The position numbers and the translations under genes were made by a program. Below the pieces are notes generated by a model, which made no database searches, had not been told where the DNA came from, and worked only from the letters and a program-made list of their open reading frames with translations. 64,000 bases of DNA, taken from positions 62,001-126,000 of the forward strand of contig CATNEN010000006.1 in the NCBI GenBank assembly GCA_950097015.1, read 5' to 3'. How positions within the stretch are numbered: position 1 is the first letter of the stretch; each line of letters opens with the position of its first letter. Shown here piece by piece: positions 12,201 through 49,460 of the stretch. This DNA comes from Macrostomum hystrix. Its lineage: Eukaryota > Animalia > Platyhelminthes.

Positions 12201-15200
12201 AGCTAGGGAAATCGGGTAATAGGGAAAATGGCAGCTAGAGAAATCGGGTGATAGGGAAAATAGGGAAATGGCAGCTAGAGAAATCGGGTGATAGGGAAAA
12301 TGGCAGCTAGGGAAATCGGGGTGATAGGGAAAATGGCAGCTAGGGAAATCGGGTAATAGGGAAAATGGCAGCTAGAGAAATCGGGTGATAGGGAAAATGG
12401 CAGCTAGGGAAATGGCAGCTAGGGAAATCGGGTGATAGGGAAAATGGCAGCTAGGGAAATGGCAGCTAGAGAAATCGGGTGATAGGGAAAATGGCAGCTA
12501 GGGAAATGGCAGCTAGAGAAATCGGGTGATAGGGAAAATGGCAGCTAGGGAAATCGGGTGATATGGAAAATGGCAGCTAGGGAAATGGCAGCTAGAGAAA
12601 TCGGGTGATAGGGAAAATGGCAGCTAGGGAAATGGCAGCTAGAGAAATCGGGTGATAGGGAAAATGGCAGCTAGGGAAATCGGGTGATATGGAAAATGGC
12701 AGCTAGGGAAATGGCAGCTAGAGAAATCGGGTGATAGGGAAAATGGCAGCTAGAGAAATCGGGTAATAGGGAAAATGGCAGCTAGAGAAATCGGGTGATA
12801 GGGAAAATGGCAGCTAGGGAAATGGCAGCTAGAGAAATCGGGTGATAGGGAAAATGGCAGCTAGGGAAATCGGGTGATATGGAAAATGGCAGCTAGGGAA
12901 ATGGCAGCTAGAGAAATCAGGTGATAGGGAAAATGGCAGCTAGAGAAATCGGGTAATAGGGAAAATGGCAGCTAGAGAAATCGGGTGATAGGGAAAATAG
13001 GGAAATGGCAGCTAGAGAAATCGGGTGATAGGGAAAATGGCAGCTAGGGAAATCGGGTGATAGGGAAAATGGCAGCTAGGGAAATGGCAGCTAGAGAAAT
13101 CGGGTGATAGGGAAAATGGCAGCTAGGGAAATCGGGTGATAGGGAAAATGGCAGCTAGGGAAATCGGGTGATAGGGAAAATGGCAGCTAGGGAAAAAATC
13201 GGGTGATATGGAAAATGGCAGCTAGGGAAATCGGGTGATAGGGAAAATGGCAGCTAGGGAAAAAATCGGGTGATATGGAAAATGGCAGCTAGGGAAATGG
13301 CAGCTAGAGAAATCGGGTGATAGGGAAAACGGCAACTCACTGATCCCCTCCGCCCTGGCAAAAGCCAAGATCGCAGCATGCTGAGCCGGTGTCAGGTGGG
13401 TCGGAATAACCTTGGATACCGACTGGTTGCTAAGCAATGCCTTGGAATGGATGAGGATTAAACGAAGTATGCTATCGAGCGGCAGCACGAACAGCAAACA
13501 CGAGCTGCTCTGACAATCAGTTTATGAGTTTTGCTCAATATTTTCCTACTCGAGTCTTCAACACTGGGTTGGATCAACTCACAAGCCACACAGAAAGCTC
13601 TAAACTTTGCGTGCAGGATATGTTACTCAGATATTTTGATCAGTAATTAAAAGCATTCTGCCATGCATTCGGTGCGGGTGAACGAACTTTAGTGAAAGAA
13701 AAAATCCCGCGTTTTTTTGTTTGTTTTCAAGTTCTGCTTGAAATTTCCATTCGCTAATAACTGACACAACTACTGCTGTATGATATTTATTTATAATATA
13801 TCAATATGTATTAATAGTAATAATTTTCACCCGCACCAATCAGGCCAGATGTGCAGCCGACAGCACAGCCACAGCTATTGCGCGGCGCATCTGAAGACTG
13901 CATACTACTACTACTGCTACTACTACTGCTACTACTACTGCTACTACTGCAAGGCAGCGGCATACCAGGCAGCAGGCGCCACTGCCTTTAGCCGCAGTCT
14001 CAGTCAGGTCGGTTTCCAATGCGGCAAAGCTCGGCAGATCCAGGTACGGATGCCGTGCGTAATTGAGGAACGGATCTAATAGCAGAAATTCCAGGCCGCA
14101 TTCGCTGGCAAATGTTTGAATTTCTGGCAGCACCAGCTCCCAAATTAGCTGGCGCTCGTGGCAGAAATCTGAAATATTTTTGTGATCAACAACATGCAGC
14201 GTGAGTGAGTGAGTGAGTGAGTGTGTATATATATATATTAGAATTATAATTGCAGGAGGGCTGCGGCAGTGGCACATCATTTGGTGACACTAGACCCGCA
14301 GCCAGCGAGGAGGCAATTCTGCCCATTTCGCTGACTCCTGAGCACACACGCACACAGATACTGTACGCAGGCACACGCTCACACAGGTACATCTGCCCTG
14401 ACTTTCTCATCGTCAGGCAGTGTACATATTTCATTGTGCCTTGAATTTTGGCCCTCAAGGGCATAAATTGCACGACAAGCCTCCAAGCCTTCTCTCCGCG
14501 GCTGCGCCCCAAATAAATGTGGCATCGCCGTGGAATCGAACTTTGGAACCTTGGTGCGAGAGGCAAACGCGTTAACCGCTCTGCCACCGACCCCCGTGGG
14601 TGTGTGTGAGTGTTCCAGTGTTTCCTGTTCCTCCAAAATTGCAGCAGCAACTCAACCGGAGAGAGAAAAATTCAGTCTCCGCCTGAGGCGTGAAAAGGGA
14701 GCAGCCCAACCTCCCTCATGGGAGAAACATCCGCAATATCGAATTCTGACGGCCTGTTGCTCCATGGAGGCCGGGAATGGGATTTATGAATCTCGGCATT
14801 AATTAGGAGCCGAGATTCTATTTCAACACGCTGAAGGGAGAAACGCTGGAGGAATTAAAATTAGTCCCGGCTTAGCGTAGCACTTAATATTCTCGCTTGA
14901 GCTGGGATGAATTTATTACAACATTAATTTCAAGGAAGGCCTCGTTTCAACATTCAGATTAGTCTCTAATTCCACAGTGCCTGCAAGACCCTCAGGGTCT
15001 GGTCCATGTGGGATTTGTGGCGTCCCAATGCTTCACCTACTGACGCGCCTTTCGATGCTTTTCTACCAGCTCTTCATTTTCCGATGATCTCCCTGAGTTC
15101 TCACTGACATGCCCCTTAGATCTCCCTGACGTCTCCATGACGTTTCTCGGACGTCTTCCTGAGGTCTTCCTGAGGTCTCCCTGATGTCTCCCTGAGGTCT

Positions 15201-17812: not shown

Positions 17813-20800
17813 ATGTCACTGACAAGTCATCAAATTGCTTCAATTACCCAGTCATCAATTAAAGGCCCAGCAACATTCAAGTCTTCACAAAGTTGTCATG
17901 CAAGAAAACGTGATCCTCAATCAAAGAATCAAGCGGAAAATCTTTCACCGTACAAAGTACATGATACAGTCCATTCGATACTAGAAAAATCTGGCGGTGA
18001 TTTAGAAAAGGTTGGATATTGCTTTCAGTGTTATTATTATTCTTTGTTTATTTTCATTTAGATGTGTCCCAATATATCGTCGGCGCGGATTTGCTGTTGT
18101 GTGGCTTGTGGATGCTTTTTTATAGTTATACTCGTAGTTTACTAATTTATATAGTTTTTAAAGTAAATAGTTTGCAATTTAGCTGTCGGGGCTTAATATT
18201 TCACAAACTAAAATCGATATAAAGTTAAGTTATTTTACAATGATGTACAGACTCTGTCTCATCATACGAATGGGGTCAAAGTTTATTTTTAATTAAATTT
18301 CGGCAAGCTAATAGTTTTCCCTATTTTGCATCATCTGAGTAATATTTGTTCATTTTAATATATACGGTAACTGAAGCTTTGTACTTGATTTTAATCGTCG
18401 CAATTAAATTTTGAATAAGACTTTTTTCGCAAAAATACACAATACATTATAAACACTATGTTTTGCTATCACCAAAAATAATATCTTATGTATGCATATA
18501 TACATATTGGTTCTGTATTGCATATGTTTTTATCTACCTTATACAATTATACTATATATACAACATATGTAATCAAAAGTCAAAACTTATTTATTTATAT
18601 AAATATAATAAAACGTTTTATACAATTCAGTATATATATATATATATGTAAATGTCATACTTACATAATATTGTAGGTATTGCATTAGTTATTATTTAAG
18701 TGTTTCTTAAATGTACCCTTATCCAACGGAAAATACCGTGTGGTCTTTTAAAGGTAATTGATTGAAAAATAGTTTCACTACATTTCCCGGATTACGAGCC
18801 CGTAAGCAAAGGATTCAAATTTATAATAATAAATAGCCAAAACCCGGAATTATTAATAACCTGTACAAAATTACTCATCAAAAAGCAACAATGATCTCAT
18901 TGCTAACCCAAAAAGGCCTCCCAGCTGCTGGACGAGCGCCTCAAAGCCGCCAACCGAATGATTCGCGAGCTCTCCGAGTCCGGCGACTCGCTCAGTCACG
19001 AAGAATTTCGTCAGCGAATGCGCCTGCTCAAGTCGCAGCATCGCAACACCGTGGAAATGACTGAGGACCTGCGCACCGCGGCTGCTGCAGCCGCTGGCAG
19101 CAACGGTCGCTCCGTTGCCTTTCAGGAAGCCAGAAAACCGCCGCTGCCACCGTCAGCTGCTCATGGCCTGCCTGGCAGGCGTGTTGGCGGTCAGCCATCG
19201 GGCGATGTCGAATCGGATCAGGTTGGTTCAATAATTTCTGACCCCAATGAATGTCACTGACTCGGAATCTTAGAAGTACAAGAATAAATTCTGCAGGCTA
19301 CGGTGGAGACACGTTACGCTGATCAGCAGATGCAGCAGCAGCAGCAGGAACAGCTGCGCAGTCGTGTGAAAGCGCTTTGGTCAGACTTTGACGTGCACAG
19401 CTCCCGTCAGCGACCTCGCCGTTCCGCCTCGCTGGACCGCCACATCGGAATCGGGCGCCCTGGCTCCGCGGCTTCAGCGCCTGGCGAACGACGCCGCCAA
19501 CCTGTCGCTCGACGCCGCGGTGGCAGTCAGAGCGGCGGCGACGGAGAAGAAGGCGAGATTGGTTATCTCGACGATGGCGACTACTTCGACTATGATGACG
19601 ATGGCCTCTCGTCGTCAACGTCCTGGCGTCATCGCGTCACTGTGCCGCGACCGTTTAGCATGACCTTGCGCGAAGAGGCTGCCGCGGCAGCCGGCAGTGC
19701 GGACGGCCGGCAGCAGCTGTCGGGGCTGCGTAAGTCGCGCTCGATGCGCATCCTGGCAGCTGATGTGCAGCGTCAGCGCGAAGCGGTGGAGGCGGAGTGC
19801 CGCATTCGGCCACGGGCCGCCCCAGTTCCGGCGCATGTTTATCAGCCGCTGCTGCGCGAGCTCGAGCAGCAGCGAGAGGCTCGTCGTCGCGAGGTGCGCC
19901 AGCATAGCGCCGAAATCCTGCGCGCCACGGAGCGGCCGTTCTGCTTTACAAAACGCGAGGCGGAGCGCAAACGGCAGGGCCGCGACCGGCCGACCGAGGC
20001 CGACAAGAAGCGCGGCTATCACCGGAGCGGCGCCGGCGATCGGGAGGCCACGGTGATTCGCGCCAAGCCAGCGCCGGCCAGCTGCTCCGCCGAGCGAGCC
20101 AGGCAGCTCCGCCTGGAGGCCGAGCAGCGGCGCGAGAGGGCGCGCGCCAGATCCGAGGCTAACCTGCGCCGCTCTGCAATGCCCGGCGACATGGCCGAAC
20201 GTCAGCGCATCATGGACGCCAAGCGCAGTGCCCGCCTGGCCGCCAGCGCGTCCACCGCGGCCGGCGGTAAGCAGGTTGTCGGACGCGACGCGCCTGACTT
20301 CGACCGTCTGCACCGGCAGTTCCAGCTGGGCATGCTGGAGCGCCAGGCTGAGGTTCGAGTGACCCGGCCGGAGCCGTTTCGGCTGCTCACTGAGCAGAGG
20401 GCGAAGGTGGCTCAGGTGAGTTTGAGTCCGATTCTCAGCTTCTGTGCGAATTCAGATGTGCCAGAAAAATGTGGGGTGTCTGTAGATCCTTTTCTTTTGA
20501 GACTTTCGATTTTAACAGCAGAAATATCACAGGAATAATAACAATGATAATTGCAGGAGGGCAGTGGCACATCATTTGGTGACACTAGACCCACAGCCAG
20601 CGAGGAGGCAATTCTGTCCATTCCGCTGACTCCTGAGCACATACTGTACGTAGGCACACGCTCACACAGGTGTGTACATCTGCCCTGACTTTCTCATAGT
20701 CAGGCAGTGTACACTCTCACTGTGCATTGGAGGTTGGCCCTCAAGGGCATAAATTGCACGACAAGCCTCCAAGCCTTCTCTCCGCGGCTGCGCCCCAAAT

Positions 20801-23800
20801 GAATGTGGCCTCGACGCGAAGTCCAGCTCAGGGACCTTGGTGCGAGAGGCAAACGCGTTAACCGCTCTACACTCACCCTCTTTTGATGTTTAACAGTATA
20901 AACGGCTATTTAAACCCCAGTTCATCGTAAGAAACTCAGTTCGGGTTGGATCGTGAAGTTGGCAGTGGGTATTTGAAAAACCTCTGTGGTCTCTTCCCAG
21001 GTGGAAAATAGCGTGGCATTCCTACTGTTAAGGATTTCGGATCCTGTCTGTAGGTCTGTAGATAAGTTGGATTGTCTGCACTCTTGCAGGTGCACACTGA
21101 AAAGTGTCTCGCTAGCGACCAAGATCCAAAGGCCAATAGGACATTGTACGACTTCTCACTGCGCTATCCGACTGACCCGGCGGATGAGACGGAGGCTGCG
21201 GATGCGGCGGCAGCTGCCGCGGCTGAGAGAGAGCGGCGACGCAGGGTAGAGCAGAAACGGTGAGGCTACAGTACGATTCAACATGAGTACTTACGGAGAA
21301 TGTATGCCACAATCCTACTGTCAGTTGTATACAAGTACATTACATTATCCTACTGCCAGTAGTGCAGAACTTACTATCCTACTGTCAGTAGTGCAGAACT
21401 TACTATTCTACTGTCAGTAGTGCAGAACTTACTATTCTGCTGTCAGTAGTGCAGAACTTACTATTCTACTGTCAGTAGTGCAGAACTTACTATTCTACTG
21501 TCAGTAGTGCAGAACTTACTATTCTACTGTCAGTAGTGCAGAACTTACTATTCTACTGTCAGTAGTGCAGAACTTACTATTCTACTGTCAGTAGTGCAGA
21601 ACTTACTATTCTACTGTCAGTAGTGCAGAACTTACTATTCTACTGTCAGTAGTGCAGAACTTACTATTCTACTGTCAGTAGTGCAGAACTTACTGTCCTA
21701 CTGTCAGTAGTGCAGAACTTACTAATCTACTGTCAGTAGTGCAGAACTTACTATTCTACTGTCAGTAGTGCAGAACTTACTATTCTACTGTCAGTAGTGC
21801 AGAACTTACTATTCTACTGTCAGTAGTGCAGAACTTACTATCCTACTGTCAGTAGTGCAGAACTTACTATTCTACTGTCAGTAGTGCAGAACTTACTATC
21901 CTACTGTCAGTAGTGCAGAACTTACTATTCTACTGTCAGTAGTGCAGAACTTACTATCCTACTGTGAGTAAATTGCAGTTTCTTTATCATGGCAAACCAT
22001 TGCAGCACCAGTCCAGAGGACGAGTACAATGAGAAGCTACGCGAGCTAGACCGCAAGATGAAGGAGAGAGATCAGCTGATTGCTGAGCAGGCAGGGGTGA
22101 GTAAAAAGTAACTTGTATATTGACTTTAAGCCTTTTGTAGTAAAAGAGATATCCCTTTTCTAAAAGAAAGAAAATACATTTGTACATTCTGTAAAAGAAA
22201 GGAAACAACTTATTTAGTTAAAACAAAATTCCTTAGGAGAACGGAAATCCCTTATTTAGGAGAACGGAAATCCCTTATTTAGGAGAACGGAAATCCCTTA
22301 TTTAGGAGAACGGAAATCCCTTATTTAGGAGTAAGGAAATCTCTTTTTTAGTAGAACAGAAATCCTTCATCTAGTAGAAATTAAATCCCTTACTTAGGAG
22401 AAAGGAAATCCGTTTTCTCAGAAAAACACAAATCGCCTCTTCAAGTAGAACTCAATGCGCAAATCCTGTTTCGCCTGCGCAGCTGATCGCCCAGCAGAAC
22501 GCATGTGCCCGCTACCGGCAGAGTCTGCTGCAGGCAGGTGTCGACCCGGCTCGAGTCGCGGCTCTGGTTGGAGCTTATCGGGAGCGCGAACTCGCGACCT
22601 TCGGCGGTGACGACGCTGGCAGCGACTATTTTAACGATGGCTTCTCCTCAAGTGAGTGCAATATTTAGCTATAAACTAGCAAGTTTTGCCCCCCTTCGGG
22701 GAGCAGAAATACTTTTAATTCGTCTAGTATATACTTTTTAGCAGCTGAATTTACAGCTTTTTAAAGCTACTATGAACCCCCAGTTGACAATGATCCCCCA
22801 GTTGACAATGATCCCCCAGTTGACAATGAACCCCCAGTTGACAATGAACCCCCAGTTGACAACGATCCCCCAGTTGACAATGATCCCCCATTTGACAATG
22901 ATCCCCCAGTTGACAATGATCCCACAGTTGACAATGATCCCCCAGTTGACAAAGATCCCCCAGTTCACAATGATCCCCCAGTTGATGATGATCCCCCAGT
23001 TGATGATGATCCCCCATTTGAGAATGATCCCCCAGTTGACAATCATCCCCCAGTTGAGAATGATCCCCCAGTTGACAATGATCCCCCAGTTAACAAAGAT
23101 CCCCCAGTTCACAATGATCCCCCCAGTTGATGAAGTCTCCCCATTGATGATGATCCCCAGTTAACAATGTTCCTCCAGGTGACAATGTTCCCCCAGTTGA
23201 CAATGATCCCCCAGTTGATGATGATCCCCCAGTTGACAATGATCCCCCAGTTGACAATGATCCCCCAGTTGACAATGAACCCCCAGTTGACAATGATCCC
23301 CCAGTTGACAATGATCCCCCAGTTGACAATGATCCCCCAGTTGACAATGATCCCCCAGTTGACAATGATCCCCCAGTTGACAATGATCCCCCAGTTTACC
23401 ATGATCCCCCAGTTCACCATGATCCCCATTTTGATGATGACTCCCCAGTTGACGTTGATTTTTCAAACGCTGGGTTAGCCAAGATTCAAACTCAGGTTTC
23501 GCCATGTTTTAAACCCTGGTGGGCTATGATTCAAACTCTCGTTTTGCCATGATTCAAACTCTGGTTGGCTATGATTCAAACTCTGGTTTAGCCATGATTC
23601 AAACTCTGGTTTAGCCATGATTCAAACGCTGGTTTAGCCATGATTCAAACTCTATTTTAGCCATGATTCAGACTCTGGTTTAGCCATGATTCGGACTCTG
23701 GTTTAGCCATGATTCAGACTCTGGTTTAGCCATGATTAAGACTCTGGTTTAGCCATGATTCAGACTCCAGTTTTGCCATGATTCGGACGCTGGTTTAGCC

Positions 23801-27411: not shown

Positions 27412-27933
27412 AATCAATCTCAGCCCACAGGTCTCTCAGCCCACAGGTCTCTCAGCCAACAGGTCTCTCAGCCCACAGGTCTCTCAGCCCACAGGTCTCT
27501 CAGCCCACAGATCTCTCAGCCCACAGGTCTCTCAGCCCACAGATCTCTCAGCCCACAGATCTCTCAGCCCACAGATCTCTCAGCCCACAGATCTCTCAGC
27601 CCACAGGTCTCTCAGCCCACAGGTCTCTCAGCCCACAGGTCTCTCAGCCCACAGATCTCTCAGCCCACAGATCTCTCAGCCCACAGGTCTCTCAGCCCAC
27701 AGGTCTCTCAGCCCACAGGTCTCTCAGCCCACAGGTCTCTCAGCCCACAGGTCTCTCAGCCCACAGGTCTCTCAGCCCACAGGTCTCTCAGCCCACAGGT
27801 CTCTCAGCCCACAGATCTCTCAGCCCACAGATCTCTCAGCCCACAGGTCTCTCAGCCCACAGGTCTCTCAGCCCACAGGTCTCTCAGCCCACAGGTCTCT
27901 TAGCCAACAGATCTCTCAGCCAACAGATCTCTC
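27412..27933. repeat. 16-bp satellite (CTCTCAGCCCACAG[G/A]T), left arm
   Basis: Same unit as 34314-41845, separated from it by the LINE insertion. Confidence 0.97.
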
Positions 27934-28026
27934 TTGACTTACTTGACTTAGCTGCAGGGGGCATCTTCCGGATGCAGCGGGGAGGCGTTGCCGCCCATTC
28001 CGCTAGCCCCTGGCGACCACGGGCAA

Positions 28027-31000
28027 CTAGAGCTGCGGTGTCGCGCAGGGGGATCCGGTGGTGCCGGCGTCCGCAGCGCGGTCCTCCTCCGGAGTGTCCA
28101 GGAGGTGGAGGGTTGCTCGCCCGGTGGCCCTCAGGTATCGGACGAGCTGGCAGATGTTCTCAGGCCTGAAAACGTCGGGGAGATCCGGGTTTGGGCCGAG
28201 ATAGGTGAGCCGGTCCTGAGTGAAGGCGGGGCAGTCGCAAATAAAATGCTCTGCATCCTCAACATAGGAGAGGCAGAAGGGGCATTCCTCACTGCGGATT
28301 TTGCCTTGCAGGAAGCGGTGCCTGGCGAAACAGCCATGGCCAGAGAGGGCCATGGTGACTGCCCTGATGTCCTTGCGGTTCAGTCCAAGCAAGGCTTTGC
28401 GAAGGGCAGTGGAGGGACAAGGGACAGCAGCGCGAGACTGCCGACAATCGGCGGTGTTGATCCATCTGTCCTTGTGCTTTGAGGTCACCCACTGGTTAAT
28501 CCGAGTGTTGACGACGGCGGTAGGGGTGGAGACCGCAGGCACGGGGCCAAAAAGCGAGCCCGTCGAACCGGCCTTGGCGAGGCTGTCGGCCAATTCGTTA
28601 CCAGGGTGGCCAGAGTGCCCTGGAATCCACCTTAGGGACACCTTGTTGTGGGTCCCTAAGCGGTTGAGTTGCGCGACGCAGTCGAGGACTGTGCGCGAGC
28701 AGGTGTGCGTGCGTCCAAGGGCATGGATCGCCGCCTGGCTGTCCGAGTGGAGGAAGATTTCCGCTCCATGGACGTTTTGGTTGATCAGCTCCAGGGCGCA
28801 GGAGCTGATGGCGAGAACTTCGTTCTGGAAGACGGTAGAGTTTATGCCGGTGTGCTGGGAGAAGGTCGCCAAAGTTTTCCCTCCGGACATAATGCAGTAG
28901 CCGAAACCAGAGATCGAGTTGATTTGCGATCCGTCGGTGAAGCAGTGAATTTCACGGGGTTGGCCGTGGTCACGTACTTCCTGTCGAGGCGGAATGCTGG
29001 TTTTGAATTTTTGCGGTGGGCACAGCGTCGACGGGATTCCGTCGGAGAGAATTTTGAGACCTCCTGCTGCGTCCAGGTCCCGTAGGCTGAGGTCGCCATG
29101 GGGCTGGAGGTTCCGCTTGCTGAAGGCAAGTTGCTTCCGGATGGAGATACCCGCGTCCAGAAGACGACGAGCCGTCTTCATCGCCTCCCCCTTGATAAAA
29201 AGATCTAAAGGGGGAAGGTCCAGGAAGGCATTCATGCCAGCGAAGGGAGTGGAGGGTGCCGCACTCATGATGGCTCGACAAGCACGGCCCTGCACCTTGT
29301 TTAGGGCCTCCAGGACCCCTTTGGTCTCCAGGGCACTATTCCAAATGAAGCCGGCAAAAGAGATGGCCGGTCTTACAATGGTAGTGTAAATCCACCAGAG
29401 ACGGCGGGGGGTGAGGCCCCAGGTGGCGCCGAAGGCTCTGCGAATCTGCGCGAGCGTCGCAAGAGCTTTACGGGTTTTGAATTTGACGTGAGGTGTCCAG
29501 CTCAACCTGTGGTCGAGGATGACACCTAAGCATCTGGTTTGCTTCTCCATGGCGATTGGTTTGTCATAGAGAAGGAGAGGCTCAATCCTCCAGTTTCGTT
29601 TGCTGGTGAACATAATGGCGACGGTCTTGGACTCAGAGAGTTTGAGGCCGCAGCCATTGGCCCAGCGTTCGGCACGGTGGATGAAAGCTTGCAGAAGGTC
29701 TCTAAGGACCGGGGGAGACGGTCCGGCCACGGTGGCGGTGACGTCGTCAGCATAGCCGATTTTTTGGACCGGGTCCGGGTCAGGGCTGCAGAGCAGTTCG
29801 TCCATGACAAGGTTCCAAAGGATCGGACTGAGAACGCCACCCTGCGGGCCTCCCTTCTGGACATTCACAGAACGGGAGTGTCCAAGCAGGTGCGAGGTGG
29901 CAGTTCGGTGAGAGATCATATACATGATCCAGCGGGTGAGGTGCTCGTGCGTAGCCCGGCGTTCCAGGGCTCGCCTAAAGGCTCCGAAGAGCACATTGTC
30001 GAAGGCACCATCAATGTCGAGGAAAAGCGAGAGAGCAAAACCGGTGCCAAGCACGGCGCGCTCCAGCTTGTCGACGATGGCATGCAGAGCACTTTCGATG
30101 GAACGTCCGGATCGAAAGGCGTGCTGGTTGGCGGAGAGCGGGGAGTTCCTCAGCTCAACGTGAAGGAGGCGCCAAAGAACAAGCCTTTCAAGCAGCTTAA
30201 GAAAGAAAGATGTTAAGCTGATGGGGCGGAAGGCTTTGGCGGAGTGGTAGTCTCCCTTCCCAGGTTTGGGGATGAAGACGATAGTGGCTTCCTGCCAAGA
30301 CCTGGGTACGTACCCGAGGGTGATACAGGCCTTGAACAGGTTGCAAAGGAGGCCGAGGAACCTGTCATTTTTTACCGCTTCATGTAGGAAGGCGGGGTAA
30401 ATGTTGTCAGGTCCAGGCGACTTAAAAGGCGAGAAGGAGTTAGCAGCGCGAGCTGTCCGTTCTCTAGTGATAATAGTTGTCGCAAGGATGTGCCCACCCG
30501 GAGTGTGGTCCGGCGGGTCCTGAAGCGGCGCAGTCTGGGGGAAGGCGCTGGCGAGCATGATGTCCAGCGATTCGCCAGGATTCTCAGCAAGCCGGCCGTC
30601 CGGTCTTTTGATCACTGAGAGCTTCGACATTTTGTCAAGAGTGAGCGCTTTTACAACGCGAGAAGTTGGGCGGGCGCCCTCCAGCTCGGAGCAGTATTGG
30701 CGCCACTTTTCGGACTTCGCTTTCCTGGTGTCACGCTTAAAGTCACGAATCGCATTCTGGTAGGCGGTCAGGTCAGCTTGGTCCTTGCTTTTCCGCGCAA
30801 TCCGCTGGAGGGATTTGGCCTTTCGCCGGAGGGTTCCAAGCGCTGGGTTCCACCAGGGAGCGGATTTTTTGCCTTTGTAGGCTTTAAGAGGGCAAGAGGT
30901 TTCATGAGCTGTCAAGATGGTCATGCTGAGTAGATCAGCCAGATCGTCCACTTCTTGACAGGTGGCAGGAACAACGGATTCTAACTGGTTGGTCTGGCGC

Positions 31001-31731
31001 TTCACGGATTCCGCAAAGGCCGTCCAGTCAGTATTCCGGGCGTTCCTTTTCCACAGAATACCAGGCTTGGAGTAGGAGCTTAGCAACCGGAAACGAATGA
31101 AGCGATGGTCAGACAGAGATTCCTCTTCGTCCCACACCTGCCAGTTCCTAATCAGAGGGATCAGGCCCTGAGAGGCGAGGGTGGCGTCAAGGACCTCCGT
31201 CCATCGTCCATTGTCAAAGGTGGGTGTGCCACCCGAGTTGCAGAACTCAATATTGGTGGTGCAGATGTAGGCAAGGAGATCCTCGCCTCTGCAGTTGGAG
31301 GTAACACTGCCCCAGTGGGTGTGGTGGGCATTTATGTCGCCTGCCACCAGCAGCTCAAAGTCGCGGTCTGAGCAGTAGTCCACGAGGGAAGTGAGACTGG
31401 GCGGAACCGCAGGACCGTCGCCAGGAATGTATATAGAGGCGATGATGACGGTGCGGTTCGGGAGAATGTGGTTGGTTTGGATGACACAGAGGTCTTTGTC
31501 AGAGAGGTCTGGTCTATACCAAGCTTTTAGATCGGTAGTCGCGAACACAGCAGCCCTGGGGTTTTGGGGCATGAAAAAACAGTCAAAACCAGCAGGAATG
31601 TTCGGAATCTTACCTTTCTTCGTCCAGGGCTCTTGGAGGAGGATGATGCCCGGTTTTTCGAAGTCCACCACACGCGCCAGGTTGGTCGAGGCCGCGATGC
31701 AGTGGTGCAGGTTCAGCTGCAGGAAGCTCAC
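28027..31731 (-). CDS. LINE ORF2: APE endonuclease, reverse transcriptase, RNase H and C-terminal CCHC
   Basis: 1234 uninterrupted codons. APE motifs [32 protein letters not shown] motifs [18 protein letters not shown]. RNase H motifs FTDGS, SDSQ, WIPGHSG..GNELAD. Zinc finger CPFC...HFICDC. The first codon is GTG, with no ATG ahead of the APE motifs. Confidence 0.95.
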
Positions 31732-31766
31732 CCCAGGAGGGGCGGTCCGTGCGGCTATCTGCTGGC

Positions 31767-33255
31767 CTACGGCGAGTTGTTCAGGAGCGATTCCTCGTCC
31801 TCGCCGGTGTTTTGCCCGAGCTCCATCGGTTCCTCCTGAATCGGATCCAGAGTTGAGGCCGGGGCTGCCGCAACAGCGGCGTCCGTGTCCTCAACCCGGT
31901 TTTCCGCTGGGGGTTCCGATGAAACATTGGGCCGGGTGGTGCTGCGGTGGCGTCCACTGTTGGGGTCCGACAGCTGTCTGGCGCGCTGAGTCAAGCCAGC
32001 ACGGATGGTGTTACGGGCGGGTTTCCGGCCCTTACCACGTCCGCCTGTCGTTGCGGCTCGCGCGGCTTTGCCCCTGATAGGGTCCGCATCCTCGGAGTGG
32101 TCGTGACGATCAGGAGTCTGTGTTCCAGGGCGCAGGGGCCCGGCAGAGCTCTGGTTCGTCCGTTTCCGCTTTTCCGGGGGCGGCGGGCGAGTGGCGTCGG
32201 ACTCGAAGCTGAAAATCTGCATTCGAGTGAGGCCTGCACTGATGTAGGACATGTCTGGGCAGCGGAGCATCCAGCTGTCCGACAATCCTAGGATGGCCGT
32301 GAAACCGTCTCCACCAGGTCTGGTGATGGTTTCATGAACCACGACACCGTTTTGCTGGCAGATCCGGGTGGATTGCCAACAGCAGGCGGCGCAGTTCTCC
32401 GGCGTTGGTGATGGCGCTGCGAGCTGGAATCCAAACACGATGACGGTGTGTCTGGGGGCGCTCGTCCTCCCTGTAGATAAACAGGTTGCCCATTTCCGTG
32501 CCCCAGTCGAAGGATTTCAGCATCTCGAGGAGTTGCTGTCCGGACTGGTTGTCGGCAGGCTGGACAATGAGGGCTTGGTCCTGGATGTCGGTCTTCAGGA
32601 CGTGCAGTACAGTGCCGCTCAGTGCCAGTTTGACCAGATGGGAGTCCAATCTGCGCCAGATCTGGTCGAGTTGCGCTGTTGTGAGGGGCGTCTCCTGGCC
32701 TCGGATAACCAAGGCCGGCTGCCTCTTTGCCATAGCAGCGTAAGTGCGCTTTGGCCTTGTGGTTTGGCCGGCGCCTCCCGCAACGGGCCCCCCAGCAGTC
32801 GTCGGAGTTTCCGGATGACTGTGAGAGGTTCCGCCGCGAGAGGAACCGGATGCCCCAGAGGCCTGGGCGGCACTTTTCCGCGCTTCCGGGTTTCCCGGAC
32901 GGCGCGAGGAGTCCGCCTCCTTGTTGGGTGCCGGTTCCTCCGCGATGTTCGCAGAGTTGCCGGCCCCCTCCTCGGAGGCGGTGGTTGGCGCGGATTCGCA
33001 GCCAACCGTACTTCCTGTTTTTCGCCGCCGGAATTCCTGGAGGCGGGCGAGGCTGCGGGCTTGCGTGGAAGGGGAGCGTTTGCTCTTTGATCCAGCCGCT
33101 CTGGTGTTTTCCTGAGTGGCGGAGGAGCAGGATGAATTTTGGGCGCCGGTGGAACCGGTGTCGCCCTGGCGCTGGTCCTGAGGATCTGCGTCGCCGGCCG
33201 GGGTCGGCGTTTCAGCAGGGTCCTGGGACGTGCTGGAGCTGTAGTGGGACTCCAT
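31767..33255 (-). CDS. LINE ORF1 (gag-like, DUF4780-like central domain), interrupted by a 1-nt frameshift near 32350
   Basis: The ORF 33255-32332 and the frame 32438-31767 join into [20 protein letters not shown] if one T of TTTT at 32350-32353 is removed. A basic low-complexity N-terminus, an RTYAAMAK motif and a folded-looking central region are typical of LOA/R1-group ORF1. Confidence 0.7.
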
Positions 33256-33374
33256 AGGTCGCTGGAAAAAGAGAAAGAAGAGAATAAAAATAAAAACCGC
33301 TAATGGCCGGATAGACTCCCCGGACCTTTCAGCCCCTCAGCGCGGTGAGACCTTAGGCATAAGAGGACACCTAA

Positions 33375-34045
33375 AGCAGTGCCAGGCCCGCAGACTGGCT
33401 GCGTACCCTGTTGAGGTCGAAGGGTGACACCTGTCCCTCAGAGCCGTAGCCAGAGGTACCTGATCACGCACAGGTGCACGAGCGCTGCGGACTGGCCGCA
33501 TACCCTGTTAAGGTCAAAGGGTGACACCCTTCCCTCAGAGCCGTAGCCAGAGGTACCTGATCACGCACAGGTGCGCGAGACGCTGCGGACTGGCCGCATA
33601 CCCTGTTAAGGTCAAAGGGTGACACCTTTCCCTCAGAGCCGTAGCCAGAGGTACCTGATCACGCACAGGTGCACGAAAACTGCGGACTGGCCGCATACCC
33701 TGTTAAGGTCAAAGGGTGACACCTTTCCCTCAGAGCCGTAGCCAGAGGTACCTGATCACGCACAGGTGCGCGAGACGCTGCGGACTGGCCGCATACCCTG
33801 TCAAGGTCAAAGGGTAAACACCTCTCCCTCAGAGCCGTAGCCAGAGGTACCTGATCACGCACAGGTGCGCGAGACGCTGCGGACTGGCCGCATACCCTGT
33901 CAAGGTCAAAGGGTAAACACCTCTCCCTCAGAGCCGTAGCCAGAGGTACCTGATCACGCACAGGTGCACGAAAGCTGCGGACTCGCCGCATACCCTGTTA
34001 AGGTCAAAGGGTGACACCTTTCCCTCCAGCCAGGGCTAGAGGTAC
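33375..34045. repeat. 97-99-bp tandem monomers (about 6.5 copies) in the LINE 5' UTR
   Basis: GTAC anchor recurs at 33456, 33553, 33651, 33748, 33847, 33946 and 34042. Confidence 0.95.
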
Positions 34046-34313
34046 CCAGTTTGGCCAGAGGCCCTGGATGGGTCATCCAGCGCTGTTGCCCATTCTGTCC
34101 GGCTGCCCTAGGGTCAGCCTTGAACACTCGCGGGACGTGTACCCATGGGTCAGCTGACGGGACAGCGTGGAGGAATCCCTGCACCCGGAGGTACAGGGCT
34201 CCTTCCTGCCAGGCCTGCTCAAAAAACGACTGCAGGTGTGAGGCATCGCAGACCTTAGCCCGTAGGCCTGGTCTGACTCATACCACACAGGCATTGTGTC
34301 CCGCCGGTGCGAG

Positions 34314-37300
34314 CAACAGATCTCTCAGCCCACAGATCTCTCAGCCCACAGGTCTCTCAGCCCACAGGTCTCTTAGCCAACAGATCTCTCAGCCAACAGA
34401 TCTCTCAGCCCACAGATCTCTCAGCCCACAGATCTCTCAGCCAACAGATCTCTCAGCCCACAGATCTCTCAGCCCACAGGTCTCTCAGCCCACAGATCTC
34501 TCAGCCCACAGGTCTCTCAGCCCACAGATCTCTCAGCCAACAGATCTCTCAGCCCACAGATCTCTCAGCCCACAGGTCTCTCAGCCCACAGGTCTCTCAG
34601 CCCACAGGTCTCTCAGCCCACAGGTCTCTCAGCCCACAGATCTCTCAGCCCACAGATCTCTCAGCCTACAGATCTCTCAGCCCACAGGTCTCTCAGCCTA
34701 CAGATCTCTCAGCCCACAGGTCTCTCAGCCCACAGATCTCTCAGCCCACAGGTCTCTCAGCCCACAGATATCTTAGCCCACAGGTCTCTCAGCCCACAGG
34801 TCTCTCAGCCCACAGGTCTCTCAGCCAACAGGTCTCTCAGCCAACAGGTCTCTCAGCCCACAGGTCTCTCAGCCCACAGATCTCTCAGCCCACAGATCTG
34901 TCAGCCCACAGGTCTCTCAGCCCACAGATCTCTCAGCCCACAGATCTCTCAGCCCACAGGTCTCTCAGCCCACAGGTCTCTCAGCCCACAGGTCTCTCAG
35001 CCCACAGGTCTCTCAGCCCACAGATCTCTCAGCCCACAGGTCTCTCAGCCCACAGATCTCTCAGCCCACAGATCTCTCAGCCCACAGATCTCTCAGCCCA
35101 CAGATCTCTCAGCCAACAGATCTCTCAGCCCACAGATCTCTCAGCCAACAGGTCTCTCAGCCCACAGATCTCTCAGCCCACAGATCTCTCAGCCCACAGA
35201 TCTCTCAGCCAACAGATCTCTCAGCCCACAGATCTCTCAGCCAACAGATCTCTCAGCCCACAGATCTCTCAGCCCACAGATCTCTCAGCCCACAGATCTC
35301 TCAGCCCACAGGTCTCTCAGCCCACAGGTCTCTCAGCCCACAGGTCTCTCAGCCCACAGGTCTCTCAGCCCACAGATCTCTCAGCCCACAGATCTCTCAG
35401 CCCACAGGTCTCTCAGCCCACAGGTCTCTCAGCCCACAGGTCTCTCAGCCCACAGGTCTCTCAGCCCACAGGTCTCTCAGCCCACAGGTCTCTCAGCCCA
35501 CAGGTCTCTCAGCCCACAGGTCTCTCAGCCCACAGGTCTCTCAGCCCACAGGTCTCTCAGCCCACAGGTCTCTCAGCCCACAGATCTCTCAGCCCACAGG
35601 TCTCTCAGCCCACAGGTCTCTCAGCCCACAGGTCTCTTAGCCAACAGATCTCTCAGCCAACAGATCTCTCAGCCCACAGATCTCTCAGCCCACAGGTCTC
35701 TCAGCCCACAGATCTGTCAGCCCACAGGTCTCTCAGCCCACAGGTCTCTCAGCCCACAGGTCTCTTAGCCAACAGATCTCTCAGCCAACAGATCTCTCAG
35801 CCCACAGATCTCTCAGCCCACAGGTCTCTCAGCCCACAGATCTGTCAGCCCACAGGTCTCTCAGCCCACAGGTCTCTCAGCCCACAGGTCTCTTAGCCAA
35901 CAGATCTCTCAGCCCACAGATCTCTCAGCCCACAGATCTCTCAGCCCACAGATCTCTCAGCCTACAGATCTCTCAGCCCACAGATCTCTCAGCCCACAGA
36001 TCTCTCAGCCTACAGATCTCTCAGCCCACAGGTCTCTCAGCCTACAGGTCTCTCAGCCTACAGGTCTCTCAGCCTACAGATCTCTCAGCCCACAGATCTC
36101 TCAGCCCACAGATCTCTCAGCCTACAGATCTCTCAGCCCACAGATCTCTCAGCCCACAGATCTCTTAGCCTACAGGTCTCTCAGCCTACAGGTCTCTCAG
36201 CCTACAGATCTCTCAGCCCACAGATCTCTCAGCCCACAGATCTCTCAGCCTACAGATCTCTCAGCCCACAGATCTCTCAGCCCACAGATCTCTCAGCCTA
36301 CAGATCTCTCAGCCCACAGGTCTCTCAGCCTACAGATCTGTCAGCCCACAGGTCTCTCAGCCCACAGGTCTCTCAGCCCACAGGTCTCTTAGCCAACAGA
36401 TCTCTCAGCCAACAGATCTCTCAGCCCACAGATCTCTCAGCCCACAGGTCTCTCAGCCCACAGATCTCTCAGCCCACAGGCCTCTCAGCCCACAGGTCTC
36501 TCAGCCCACAGATCTCTCAGCCCACAGGTCTCTCAGCCCACAGGTCTCTCAGCCCACAGGTCTCTCAGCCCACAGGTCTCTCAGCCCACAGGTCTCTCAG
36601 CCCACAGGTCTCTCAGCCCACAGATCTCTCAGCCCACAGATCTCTCAGCCTACAGATCTCTCAGCCCACAGGTCTCTCAGCCCACAGATCTCTCAGCCCA
36701 CAGGTCTCTCAGCCCACAGATCTCTCAGCCCACAGATCTCTCAGCCCACAGATCTCTCAGCCCACAGATCTCTCAGCCCACAGGTCTCTCAGCCCACAGG
36801 TCTCTCAGCCCACAGGTCTCTCAGCCCACAGATCTCTCAGCCCACAGATCTCTCAGCCCACAGGTCTCTCAGCCCACAGGTCTCTCAGCCCACAGGTCTC
36901 TCAGCCCACAGATCTCTCAGCCCACAGGTCTCTCAGCCCACAGGTCTCTCAGCCCACAGGTCTCTCAGCCCACAGGTCTCTCAGCCCACAGGTCTCTCAG
37001 CCCACAGGTCTCTCAGCCCACAGGTCTCTCAGCCCACAGGTCTCTCAGCCCACAGGTCTCTCAGCCCACAGGTCTCTCAGCCCACAGGTCTCTCAGCCCA
37101 CAGGTCTCTCAGCCCACAGATCTCTCAGCCCACAGATCTCTCAGCCCACAGGTCTCTCAGCCCACAGATCTGTCAGCCCACAGGTCTCTCAGCCCACAGG
37201 TCTCTCAGCCCACAGGTCTCTTAGCCAACAGATCTCTCAGCCAACAGATCTCTCAGCCCACAGATCTCTCAGCCCACAGATCTCTCAGCCAACAGATCTC

Positions 37301-40300
37301 TCAGCCCACAGATCTCTCAGCCCACAGATCTCTCAGCCAACAGATCTCTCAGCCCACAGATCTCTCAGCCCACAGGTCTCTCAGCCCACAGATCTCTCAG
37401 CCCACAGATCTCTCAGCCCACAGGTCTCTCAGCCCACAGATCTGTCAGCCCACAGGTCTCTCAGCCCACAGGTCTCTCAGCCCACAGGTCTCTTAGCCAA
37501 CAGATCTCTCAGCCCACAGATCTCTCAGCCAACAGATCTCTCAGCCCACAGATCTCTCAGCCCACAGATCTCTCAGCCAACAGATCTCTCAGCCCACAGA
37601 TCTCTCAGCCCACAGGTCTCTCAGCCCACAGATCTCTCAGCCCACAGATCTCTCAGCCCACAGGTCTCTCAGCCCACAGATCTGTCAGCCCACAGGTCTC
37701 TCAGCCCACAGGTCTCTCAGCCCACAGGTCTCTTAGCCAACAGATCTCTCAGCCAACAGATCTCTCAGCCCACAGATCTCTCAGCCCACAGATCTCTCAG
37801 CCAACAGATCTCTCAGCCCACAGATCTCTCAGCCCACAGATCTCTCAGCCAACAGATCTCTCAGCCCACAGATCTCTCAGCCCACAGGTCTCTCAGCCCA
37901 CAGATCTCTCAGCCCACAGGTCTCTCAGCCCACAGGTCTCTTAGCCAACAGATCTCTCAGCCAACAGATCTCTCAGCCCACAGATCTCTCAGCCCACAGA
38001 TCTCTCAGCCAACAGATCTCTCAGCCCACAGATCTCTCAGCCCACAGATCTCTCAGCCAACAGATCTCTCAGCCCACAGATCTCTCAGCCCACAGGTCTC
38101 TCAGCCCACAGATCTCTCAGCCCACAGATCTCTCAGCCCACAGATCTCTCAGCCCACAGATCTCTCAGCCAACAGATCTCTCAGCCCACAGATCTCTCAG
38201 CCCACAGGTCTCTCAGCCCACAGATCTCTCAGCCCACAGGTCTCTCAGCCCACAGGTCTCTCAGCCCACAGGTCTCTCAGCCCACAGGTCTCTCAGCCCA
38301 CAGGTCTCTCAGCCCACAGGTCTCTCAGCCCACAGGTCTCTCAGCCCACAGGTCTCTCAGCCCACAGGTCTCTCAGCCCACAGATATCTTAGCCCACAGG
38401 TCTCTCAGCCCACAGGTCTCTCAGCCCACAGGTCTCTCAGCCAACAGGTCTCTCAGCCAACAGGTCTCTCAGCCCACAGGTCTCTCAGCCCACAGATCTC
38501 TCAGCCCACAGATCTGTCAGCCCACAGGTCTCTCAGCCCACAGATCTCTCAGCCCACAGATCTCTCAGCCCACAGGTCTCTCAGCCCACAGGTCTCTCAG
38601 CCCACAGGTCTCTCAGCCCACAGGTCTCTCAGCCCACAGATCTCTCAGCCCACAGGTCTCTCAGCCCACAGATCTCTCAGCCCACAGATCTCTCAGCCCA
38701 CAGATCTCTCAGCCCACAGATCTCTCAGCCAACAGATCTCTCAGCCCACAGATCTCTCAGCCAACAGGTCTCTCAGCCCACAGATCTCTCAGCCCACAGA
38801 TCTCTCAGCCCACAGATCTCTCAGCCAACAGATCTCTCAGCCCACAGATCTCTCAGCCAACAGATCTCTCAGCCCACAGATCTCTCAGCCCACAGATCTC
38901 TCAGCCCACAGATCTCTCAGCCCACAGGTCTCTCAGCCCACAGGTCTCTCAGCCCACAGGTCTCTCAGCCCACAGGTCTCTCAGCCCACAGATCTCTCAG
39001 CCCACAGATCTCTCAGCCCACAGGTCTCTCAGCCCACAGGTCTCTCAGCCCACAGGTCTCTCAGCCCACAGGTCTCTCAGCCCACAGGTCTCTCAGCCCA
39101 CAGGTCTCTCAGCCCACAGGTCTCTCAGCCCACAGGTCTCTCAGCCCACAGGTCTCTCAGCCCACAGGTCTCTCAGCCCACAGGTCTCTCAGCCCACAGA
39201 TCTCTCAGCCCACAGGTCTCTCAGCCCACAGGTCTCTCAGCCCACAGGTCTCTTAGCCAACAGATCTCTCAGCCAACAGATCTCTCAGCCCACAGATCTC
39301 TCAGCCCACAGATCTCTCAGCCCACAGATCTCTCAGCCTACAGATCTCTCAGCCCACAGGTCTCTCAGCCTACAGGTCTCTCAGCCTACAGGTCTCTCAG
39401 CCTACAGATCTCTCAGCCCACAGATCTCTCAGCCCACAGATCTCTCAGCCTACAGATCTCTCAGCCCACAGATCTCTCAGCCCACAGATCTCTTAGCCTA
39501 CAGGTCTCTCAGCCTACAGGTCTCTCAGCCTACAGATCTCTCAGCCCACAGATCTCTCAGCCCACAGATCTCTCAGCCTACAGATCTCTCAGCCCACAGA
39601 TCTCTCAGCCCACAGATCTCTCAGCCTACAGATCTCTCAGCCCACAGGTCTCTCAGCCTACAGATCTGTCAGCCCACAGGTCTCTCAGCCCACAGGTCTC
39701 TCAGCCCACAGGTCTCTTAGCCAACAGATCTCTCAGCCAACAGATCTCTCAGCCCACAGATCTCTCAGCCCACAGGTCTCTCAGCCCACAGATCTCTCAG
39801 CCCACAGGCCTCTCAGCCCACAGGTCTCTCAGCCCACAGATCTCTCAGCCCACAGGTCTCTCAGCCCACAGGTCTCTCAGCCCACAGGTCTCTCAGCCCA
39901 CAGGTCTCTCAGCCCACAGGTCTCTCAGCCCACAGGTCTCTCAGCCCACAGATCTCTCAGCCCACAGATCTCTCAGCCTACAGATCTCTCAGCCCACAGG
40001 TCTCTCAGCCCACAGATCTCTCAGCCCACAGGTCTCTCAGCCCACAGATCTCTCAGCCCACAGATCTCTCAGCCCACAGATCTCTCAGCCCACAGATCTC
40101 TCAGCCCACAGGTCTCTCAGCCCACAGGTCTCTCAGCCCACAGGTCTCTCAGCCCACAGATCTCTCAGCCCACAGATCTCTCAGCCCACAGGTCTCTCAG
40201 CCCACAGGTCTCTCAGCCCACAGGTCTCTCAGCCCACAGATCTCTCAGCCCACAGGTCTCTCAGCCCACAGGTCTCTCAGCCCACAGGTCTCTCAGCCCA

Positions 40301-41845
40301 CAGGTCTCTCAGCCCACAGGTCTCTCAGCCCACAGGTCTCTCAGCCCACAGGTCTCTCAGCCCACAGGTCTCTCAGCCCACAGGTCTCTCAGCCCACAGG
40401 TCTCTCAGCCCACAGGTCTCTCAGCCCACAGGTCTCTCAGCCCACAGATCTCTCAGCCCACAGATCTCTCAGCCCACAGGTCTCTCAGCCCACAGATCTG
40501 TCAGCCCACAGGTCTCTCAGCCCACAGGTCTCTCAGCCCACAGGTCTCTTAGCCAACAGATCTCTCAGCCAACAGATCTCTCAGCCCACAGATCTCTCAG
40601 CCCACAGATCTCTCAGCCAACAGATCTCTCAGCCCACAGATCTCTCAGCCCACAGATCTCTCAGCCAACAGATCTCTCAGCCCACAGATCTCTCAGCCCA
40701 CAGGTCTCTCAGCCCACAGATCTCTCAGCCCACAGATCTCTCAGCCCACAGGTCTCTCAGCCCACAGATCTGTCAGCCCACAGGTCTCTCAGCCCACAGG
40801 TCTCTCAGCCCACAGGTCTCTTAGCCAACAGATCTCTCAGCCCACAGATCTCTCAGCCAACAGATCTCTCAGCCCACAGATCTCTCAGCCCACAGATCTC
40901 TCAGCCAACAGATCTCTCAGCCCACAGATCTCTCAGCCCACAGGTCTCTCAGCCCACAGATCTCTCAGCCCACAGATCTCTCAGCCCACAGGTCTCTCAG
41001 CCCACAGATCTGTCAGCCCACAGGTCTCTCAGCCCACAGGTCTCTCAGCCCACAGGTCTCTTAGCCAACAGATCTCTCAGCCAACAGATCTCTCAGCCCA
41101 CAGATCTCTCAGCCCACAGATCTCTCAGCCAACAGATCTCTCAGCCCACAGATCTCTCAGCCCACAGATCTCTCAGCCAACAGATCTCTCAGCCCACAGA
41201 TCTCTCAGCCCACAGGTCTCTCAGCCCACAGATCTCTCAGCCCACAGGTCTCTCAGCCCACAGGTCTCTCAGCCCACAGGTCTCTCAGCCCACAGATCTC
41301 TCAGCCCACAGGTCTCTCAGCCCACAGGTCTCTCAGCCCACAGGTCTCTTAGCCAACAGATCTCTCAGCCAACAGATCTCTCAGCCCACAGATCTCTCAG
41401 CCCACAGATCTCTCAGCCAACAGATCTCTCAGCCCACAGATCTCTCAGCCCACAGATCTCTCAGCCCACAGGTCTCTCAGCCCACAGATCTGTCAGCCCA
41501 CAGGTCTCTCAGCCCACAGGTCTCTCAGCCCACAGGTCTCTTAGCCAACAGATCTCTCAGCCAACAGATCTCTCAGCCCACAGATCTCTCAGCCCACAGA
41601 TCTCTCAGCCAACAGATCTCTCAGCCCACAGATCTCTCAGCCCACAGATCTCTCAGCCAACAGATCTCTCAGCCAACAGATCTCTCAGCCCACAGGTCTC
41701 TCAGCCCACAGATCTCTCAGCCCACAGATCTCTCAGCCCACAGATCTCTCAGCCCACAGATCTCTCAGCCTACAGATCTCTCAGCCTACAGATCTCTCAG
41801 CCCACAGATCTCTCAGCCCACAGATCTCTCAGCCTACAGATCTGT
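34314..41845. repeat. 16-bp satellite, right arm (about 7.5 kb)
   Basis: Continuous CTCTCAGCCCACAG[G/A]T units with CAAC, CTAC, CTTAG and CTGTC variants. Confidence 0.98.
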
Positions 41846-44355: not shown

Positions 44356-45258
44356 CGCTTGGAAGACTTGAAGAGACTTGAAAAAAAGCAAAAAAAGTTT
44401 GGCGCTCAGAAACTGCTCAAGGTCTCAGGGCGGAGCGCTGCCTCAAATACTGGTTGGACAACCCCAATACTGTCAGAGTACCTGACAGGTTGACGCCAGC
44501 GAACTCAGAACTATTCCGAGAATACCGTCACACCTGGTCAAAGGTTTTTTGGTCCCACCCTCTCAACAATGCCCTAGCACGGCTGACAGCTCACTGGCCA
44601 ATTAGTTGCGACGTGCCAGGCAACCAACCAACAGCGCAGTAGATTAGGTGCCAGGCATTTAGCAGGAATGTGAACTCAGGTCAAGCTTCATTTCTAGAGA
44701 AGTGCACTATCAGCTGACCGATGTTTGAATATTTTTGGAGATACAGAAAAATATATATGTAAGTATTTATAATATGTAAGTTACTTAAATATGTAAGTAT
44801 TAAGTATATGTAAGTATTTGACCACCACCCGGTGGTCTTTCTACTGTTGAAAAATATACGAGTACACTCATGGGCAGAAAAGTTCAAGAAATTTGGAATA
44901 TTTGATCATTCCAGGGCTGCAGACTGACGGACTGTTTGGTCATTGAGAAAAAACTATAGAGGCAAACAAAAAGTATTTTAACTATTCATATTAAAATTGT
45001 CAGAGTGCGATGATGCAATCATAGCTTACGCAATTGATGACTATGAAAACAAGAGAAATGGTCAATAGCAAGTCAAAGTTCGATTGAAATTTGATCGGTA
45101 TGGACAAATTGTAATTAATTTAGTCGAGAAACAAACCATTTCTTATATACTACTACGGCAGGGTGGTTGAGTAGTAAGTAATACTCATGAAAAGCTGACT
45201 TTATAACAATTCTTGCGAGACCGAGGCCCCAGCGTTCCGCAATCAGTAGCGGTATCTA

Positions 45259-49432: not shown

Positions 49433-49460
49433 GTGTCTGTGCACAGCAGTCATACTGATC

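Follow-up and report, generated by a model that had tools for sequence, protein, structure and literature searches.

In the established model of stringent-type LINEs (reviewed in PMC3747384), the ORF2 protein recognises a folded structure at the 3' terminus of the LINE RNA, and a SINE that ends in this structure is copied in trans. A stretch of the genome of the flatworm Macrostomum hystrix, 64,000 nt long (GCA_950097015.1, contig CATNEN010000006.1, positions 62,001-126,000, forward strand) and referred to here as the window, raises the question of whether such a partnership links one LINE to two SINE families, SINE1 and SINE2, whose 3' ends resemble its own. Here, we present evidence that the 3' module common to these LINE and SINE elements is real and well supported, with a structure that is better defined than in the initial annotation of the locus, and we weigh the ways in which it may have come to be shared.

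The LINE is inserted in a 16-bp satellite array (27418-27933 and 34316-41843) and is flanked by a target site duplication (TSD) of 12-13 bp, AGAGATCTGTTG, at 27921-27932 and 34314-34325. Its parts, all on the minus strand, are as follows.

27933-34313, minus strand: full-length non-LTR retrotransposon of ~6.38 kb, with the same satellite on both flanks
27933-27952, minus strand: LINE tail, GC followed by two TAAGTCAAG units, a tail type also present in six other LINE lineages
27953-28012, minus strand: LINE 3' module, 60 nt, a three-way junction, followed by CA
28027-31731, minus strand: ORF2, 1234 codons open, encoding APE endonuclease, reverse transcriptase (RT), RNase H and a C-terminal Cys/His motif (Pfam)
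31767-33255, minus strand: ORF1, in two overlapping frames (32332-33255 and 31767-32438) with a frameshift near 32350
33393-34026, minus strand: LINE 5' UTR, ~6.5 tandem 97-bp monomers

The tandem monomers of the 5' UTR recall the monomeric promoters of mouse L1. The satellite around the element has the unit ACAGATCTCTCAGCCC and forms an array more than 8 kb long, and minisatellites are unusually frequent across the window as a whole (33 TRF rows, with units of 16-97 bp). No further LINE was found in the window, where the remaining long open reading frames are host-gene exons. Those with host-gene domains include a NACHT/AAA ATPase-like frame (8285-9664, minus strand), a FAM161A/B frame (19303-20538, plus strand) and a fatty acid hydroxylase frame (43396-44391, minus strand).

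This copy had been put forward as an intact candidate donor for the SINEs, a description that its reading frames contradict. ORF1 is interrupted by the frameshift near 32350, whereas a relative 74% identical to the window LINE (L001) has a continuous ORF1 of 525 aa. Additionally, ORF2 lacks an ATG at the position of the L001 methionine, and its first methionine is residue 54, which lies within the endonuclease. Judged from these frames, the window copy is full-length yet probably defective.

The Pfam domains of ORF2 are Exo_endo_phos_2 (96-212), RVT_1 (487-738) and RNase_H (927-1056). An APE endonuclease, an RT and an RNase H that follows the RT are thus encoded in one frame, as is characteristic of the I superfamily, and on this domain order the window LINE is an I-superfamily non-LTR retrotransposon. 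The best solved relative of its endonuclease is that of TRAS1, a member of the R1 clade, and the closest named proteins to ORF2 are gene models of Macrostomum lignano. The initial annotation had described the element as LOA-type, and the LOA clade (Loa, Lian, Bilbo) is indeed like the window LINE in its APE, RT and RNase H architecture. The ORF1 proteins of I, LOA, R1 and Jockey elements, however, are known to carry CCHC zinc knuckles, and the window LINE differs in this respect: its ORF1 has none, the 525-aa ORF1 of L001 contains no CCHC knuckle pattern and gives no zf-CCHC match in Pfam, and the ORF1 of more distant relatives carries DUF4780. To judge from these sequences, DUF4780 appears to be an ORF1 domain of this LINE group; a literature search on the domain found no relevant papers. 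Molluscs are the only other lophotrochozoans for which we found a published survey, and nearly all of their I-superfamily elements are Nimb or Ingi (PMC10294476). Because of the missing knuckles, the DUF4780 domain of the relatives and the composition of the superfamily in molluscs, the LINE is assigned here to the I superfamily and to no clade within it.

SINE1 and SINE2 are short, non-coding, high-copy elements that are flanked by TSDs and end in a simple-repeat tail. SINE1 is ~350 bp long and is represented in the window by seven copies and one fragment; SINE2 is represented by one copy.

14235-14590, minus strand: SINE1, full length, ~356 bp; 3' module at 14251-14340, then a tail of (ATT)n type
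20543-20868, minus strand: SINE1; 3' module at 20552-20635
45310-45655, minus strand: SINE1; 3' module at 45315-45403; 12-bp TSD ACC[G/A]CCATCGCC
3125-3349, plus strand: SINE1, 5'-truncated; 3' module at 3272-3349; the copy aligned with the LINE in the initial annotation
4016-4935, plus strand: SINE1 split by a SINE2 insertion, with SINE1 parts at 4016-4286 and 4886-4935
49482-49790, plus strand: SINE1, older; 3' module at 49706-49789, partly decayed
54240-54573, minus strand: SINE1, old and divergent (~72% identity), with P1 UAGAAG/CUUCUG and pairing kept
4287-4872, minus strand: SINE2, 586 bp; 3' module at 4299-4395; (TAGA)3 tail at 4287-4298

The 3' end of SINE1 is CCTCCTGCA followed by (ATT)n, and that of SINE2 is GCCCCCTGCA followed by AA and (TAGA)3, so that the (ATT)n tail belongs to SINE1 and the (TAGA)n tail to SINE2. 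The SINE2 copy is nested within a SINE1 copy and is bounded by a perfect 13-bp TSD, GACACTAGACCCG, at 4274-4286 and 4873-4885. A 30-bp minisatellite of 28 copies (48593-49480) adjoins the 5' end of the SINE1 at 49482-49790, and the SINE1 at 20543-20868 begins 5 bp past the end of the FAM161-like frame.

The head of SINE2 is related to that of SINE1. By eye, both heads contain an A-box-like sequence, TGGCAGAGCGG or TGGGTCAGCGG, and a B-box-like sequence, GTTCGATTC; no tRNA was found in them by ARAGORN, and there was no match to the Rfam tRNA family even at E-values up to 10. The first bases of the LINE (CTCGCACCGG, 34313-34298) resemble the CTCGCACCAAGG block of both SINE heads (e.g. 14545-14560), possibly by chance.

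Both families extend well beyond the window. In one public DNA run from the same organism, ~19,700 contig pieces map to the 1.1-kb SINE1/SINE2 stretch. Many contigs of this run lack exactly 599 nt, the joint being ambiguous by 13 bases; they represent SINE1 copies without the SINE2 insertion. The sequence that follows CCTCCTGC family-wide in these contigs is AATTATTATT, and the tails of the SINE families are confirmed there. In a second organism, a 533-nt contig spans almost the whole of SINE2 and likewise ends in TAGA repeats.

The resemblance between the LINE and the SINEs had been noticed as an ungapped alignment of the LINE (27975-28012, minus strand) with SINE1 (3272-3309, plus strand). 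The alignment was confirmed at 31 of 38 positions, with seven differences, and the inner and outer stem sequences quoted for the LINE, SINE1 and SINE2 are all correct. The same annotation had described a terminal motif downstream of the stem-loop. The sequences and coordinates of this motif stand, GCCCCCTGCA being found at 27953-27962 of the LINE and at 4299-4308 of SINE2 (both minus strand) and GCCCTCCTGCA at 14251-14261 and 20552-20562 of SINE1. The motif is not a separate element, however, but the 3' strand of a helix. This helix, P1 (CAGGGG/CCCCUG), is formed by CAGGGG, which lies directly before the stem-loop, and by CCCCUG within the motif. Since the terminal motif pairs with CAGGGG, the stem-loop and the motif together constitute one three-way junction of P1, P2 and P3. 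P2 is a two-tier hairpin with a lower helix of 5 bp (P2a), an AAU/CC (3x2) internal loop, and an upper helix of 5 bp (P2b) that is closed by a G.U pair and capped by a 4-nt loop. P3 is a short second hairpin that varies in length and sequence. After the module come CA and then GC in the window LINE, AA in SINE2 or nothing in SINE1, before the tail begins.

Structure prediction agrees with this arrangement. P1 and P2 were predicted by RNAalifold from four LINEs. When modules were folded singly, from CAGGRG to CTGCA, the strict Y was the minimum-energy fold in 9 of 13, including the divergent LINE L002 and SINE2, and the other four folds were near variants of the Y; among 400 dinucleotide shuffles of each sequence, the Y topology appeared in none or one. 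The short stem-loops taken alone have folding energies that are ordinary for their composition (z of -0.5 to -2 for several LINE modules). No Rfam family matches the module at its gathering score.

To what extent the SINE ends match those of the LINEs was measured with covariance models built from LINE 3' ends only, which avoids circularity. One model (R2) comprised the window LINE and two relatives and another (R3) comprised three LINE loci, all outside the window; each was searched against the whole window with filters off (128 kb searched). These models replaced an earlier one (R1), built from LINEs and SINE1, that was dominated by the P3 sequence of SINE1, missed L002 and detected SINE2 only at an E-value of 0.94. 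The SINE1 copies are the top non-LINE matches of both LINE-only models, with E-values of 3e-10 to 6e-7. SINE2 is the next match, at E-values of 0.2 (R2) and 0.04-0.06 (R3) and with a weak score of 15-17 bits. Its model alignment nevertheless runs from end to end and stops exactly at the last body base before the tail, and a chance match at this exact terminus would be expected about once in 1e4 to 1e5 trials. Part of the case for SINE2 comes from this exact position, its score being modest. These searches show homology between the SINE 3' ends and the terminal part of the LINE 3' UTR, as would be expected of a stringent partnership, and by this measure the similarity between LINE and SINEs is far beyond chance. 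This similarity sets in with the first base of P1 and runs as far as CTGCA; given these bounds, the captured unit coincides with the structural unit.

The module was followed beyond the window in six further LINE lineages recovered from public contigs (L128, L001, L129, L130, L132 and L002). It is present in all seven lineages when the window LINE is included, although their ORF2 sequences are only 46-82% identical over the parts compared, and its length is exactly 60 nt in four of them. In all seven, GCAG comes next, then C or A, then TAAGTCAA(G) units. Three relatives were left out of this comparison, namely a 55%-identical LINE (P0002) and two whose contigs end 60 and 19 nt past the stop codon (L131 and L133, respectively). 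This distribution indicates that the module is ancestral in the LINE lineage. Three more distant relatives from metagenomes (L003-L005, ~35% identity) gave no match to R1, and on that account the module seems to be confined to the Macrostomum-type lineage. The tails of these distant elements are of other kinds: L003 has an AAT/TAA-type run (4990-5030) and L004 has three TTGGAAC units (5675-5710).

Relatives of the LINE at 45-82% identity are found in environmental metagenomes (L128, L129, L130 and L133 from JGI; L131 and L132 from ENA). Their presence suggests that these samples contain Macrostomum-like flatworm DNA. A search of metagenome and viral collections with an exact pattern of the P2 core returned more than 120 further loci, which were dropped as chance matches; none has flanking P1 strands.

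A covarying 3' structure common to the LINE, SINE1 and SINE2 had been proposed from the few copies in the window, and the wider comparison upholds it, with compensatory changes in both P1 and P2. Pairs were counted in 13 sequences aligned to R3, behind which stand only a small number of independent lineages, about nine. The counts lean toward structure because the structure of the model guided the alignments and the sequences share ancestry; with this in mind, 96.2% of cells are standard pairs, as against 44-62% when the partners are slid by 1-3 columns. Both sides change in 9 of the 19 pairs, a number reached by none of 500 shuffles (mean 4.4). P2a is paired throughout (100%), with four of its five pairs compensatory, and all 12 sequences with letters at the base of P2b retain its G.U pair. 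Pairing looked the same in smaller sets of sequences.

The individual changes can be followed from lineage to lineage. SINE1 has A-U at pair 5 of P1, where the LINEs and SINE2 have G-C, and in the module of the old SINE1 (54240-54327) P1 has become UAGAAG/CUUCUG, again by compensation. P2a takes the forms AGCGG/CCGCU, AGCGG/UCGCU, AGCGA/UCGCU, CGGAG/UUCCG and CGGCG/CGCCG, according to lineage. The variants listed for the SINE2 module across many genomic contigs (4367-4371) fall within the P2 apical loop or at its margin; a further listed variant has an extra C in the P1 3' strand (4302).

The tails behave differently from the module. UnaL2 and UnaSINE1, the best-studied stringent pair, have a tail repeat in common. 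A terminal repeat shared in this manner was not found here: the tail is made of TAAGTCAAG units in the LINEs, of (ATT)n in SINE1 and of (TAGA)n in SINE2. Among the seven LINE lineages none has an (ATT)n or (TAGA)n tail, and all end in TAAGTCAAG-type units, so that the relatives with SINE-type tails which the initial annotation had suggested looking for are absent from this sample (0/7). The marks of integration, in contrast, are alike. TSDs are 12-13 bp for the LINE, 13 bp for SINE2 and 12 bp for SINE1, and together with these matching lengths one SINE1 copy is truncated at its 5' end, a signature of the kind expected if the elements are integrated by one machinery.

The reading that we favour is stringent 3'-end recognition, in which the ORF2 protein of this LINE lineage would copy SINE1 and SINE2 RNA in trans by means of the module; on the sequence evidence, we give it a probability of about 0.7. 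The LINE RNA ends in a three-way junction of ~60 nt in which P1 clamps the hairpins P2 and P3, and the junction lies two bases before the short-repeat tail, where reverse transcription would start. The ORF2 protein would bind this structured 3' end of its own RNA and prime on the adjacent repeat tail at the nicked target, and a SINE RNA that presents the same junction would be copied in trans. The equal TSD lengths, the 5'-truncated SINE1 and the position of the listed SINE2 variants, mostly at the P2 apical loop, favour this mechanism. We infer that the module would be the recognition element of the protein and that each SINE would be driven by this LINE lineage and not by a sister outside the sample. 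The main difficulty for the mechanism is the difference in tails: the junction may suffice, the tails being free to change by slippage, or the partners of the SINEs may be unsampled sister LINEs.

In the latter case the module would still be the recognition element, but each SINE would be driven by a sister LINE bearing an (ATT)n or a (TAGA)n tail. The lack of either tail in all seven sampled lineages fits this explanation, as do the P1 (CAGGAG/CUCCUG) and the P2b closing pair (A-U) of SINE1, which are unlike those of every sampled LINE. Furthermore, SINE1 has slightly more matches to L128 (33/40) than to the window LINE (31/40), and the P2a of SINE2 (CGGCG) is nearer to that of the divergent L002 (CGGAG) than to that of the window LINE. 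Yet the sample comprises only seven lineages, mostly stray contigs, and no LINE in it matches the SINEs much better than the window LINE does; tails of SINEs partnered with I-clade elements have, moreover, been reported to change by slippage, to go by the title under which PMC3747384 cites Tu et al. 2004. Sister LINEs are accordingly a possibility that we hold only tentatively. A more distant prospect is that the module is a relic of the way in which the SINEs arose, by a template switch from LINE RNA onto a small pol III transcript, and that mobilisation has ceased to depend on it, the SINEs being copied through their tails or by some other enzyme. In both SINEs P3 has been replaced by unrelated, longer hairpins, and the tails differ, so that parts of the 3' end have been free to change. 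P1 and P2, however, have been kept paired by compensation within and between the SINE families, including the copy at 54240-54327; the G.U pair and the AAU loop are also kept, and the listed SINE2 variants lie in or next to the P2 apical loop save for the single addition to the P1 3' strand. We consider a relic improbable.

Coincidence of composition, with G+C-rich palindromes lying near the ends of unrelated repeats, might also give rise to such a resemblance; in its favour are the folding energies of the stem-loops alone, unexceptional for their composition (z -0.5 to -2 for several LINE modules), and the many chance matches returned by a metagenome pattern scan with 17 specified core bases. 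Against it, covariance-model E-values fall as low as 3e-10, the metagenome and viral pattern matches, more than 120 in number, all lack flanking P1 strands, and the Y topology almost never arises in shuffles. For SINE1, chance is already refuted, and as a general account it deserves hardly any credence.

The initial annotation had treated a pair of SINE families tied to an RNase H-bearing LINE as a novelty, and Tad1 elements, which carry RNase H, are among the LINEs for which SINE partners are in fact on record. The Tad1-clade pairs are fungal, Mg-SINE with MgL/MGR583 and SINE2-1_BG with Tad1-24_BG, and the Gecko SINE of Aedes aegypti, which has a tRNA promoter, is listed with the I-clade LINEs MosquI / I-74_AAe (Ohshima 2013, PMC3747384, Table 1; original description by Tu, Li and Mao 2004, Genetics). 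The claim of novelty in that form is therefore withdrawn. The Gecko/MosquI pair is like the flatworm pair in that the SINE has its 3' end in common with an I-superfamily LINE and the host is a protostome, the SINE heads here being A/B-box-like only, and in that tails differ and change ('The changing tails...', in the words of the title). The flatworm system differs from it in its host, which is not an insect, in comprising two SINE families, and in a LINE whose ORF1 is without CCHC knuckles; the element is moreover defined here as a 60-nt three-way junction across seven LINE lineages. By description, the Tad1 pairs resemble the flatworm pair in that the LINE partner belongs to another I-superfamily lineage; their hosts differ, being fungi.

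The pairs of the UnaL2/UnaSINE1 (eel), L2, CR1 and RTE type share with the flatworm elements a conserved 3' stem-loop just upstream of a short-repeat tail, a SINE 3' end derived from the LINE, and compensatory changes in the stem (Okada/Ohshima model, reviewed in PMC3747384). In contrast to these pairs, the flatworm LINE belongs to the RNase H-bearing I group rather than to L2, CR1 or RTE, its RNA folds into a three-way junction where theirs forms a single hairpin, and the tails of LINE and SINEs differ. Our literature search found no description of a LINE/SINE partnership in Macrostomum or in Platyhelminthes.

These observations add a LINE/SINE partnership from a superfamily with few documented partners. 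A bolder proposal, which we advance with some reserve, is that the 60-nt junction, with its P1 helix, two-tier hairpin, invariant G.U pair and AAU loop, might be the template handle of the RT irrespective of the tail, and that at least two SINE families captured it separately and rose to ~1e3 to 1e4 copies with tails of their own. If this is true, the junction would give this LINE superfamily its first structurally defined recognition module, and the partnership would be the first described in Platyhelminthes, in a species open to transgenesis. The module is small, sharply bounded and rich in compensation, and is thus a good substrate for asking how an RT recognises its template, that is, whether a stringent-type RT reads the geometry of the junction, the G.U pair beside the internal loop, or the tail. 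Macrostomum genomes are very repeat-rich, and a covariance model of the module would mark the 3' ends of several of their abundant repeat families at once.
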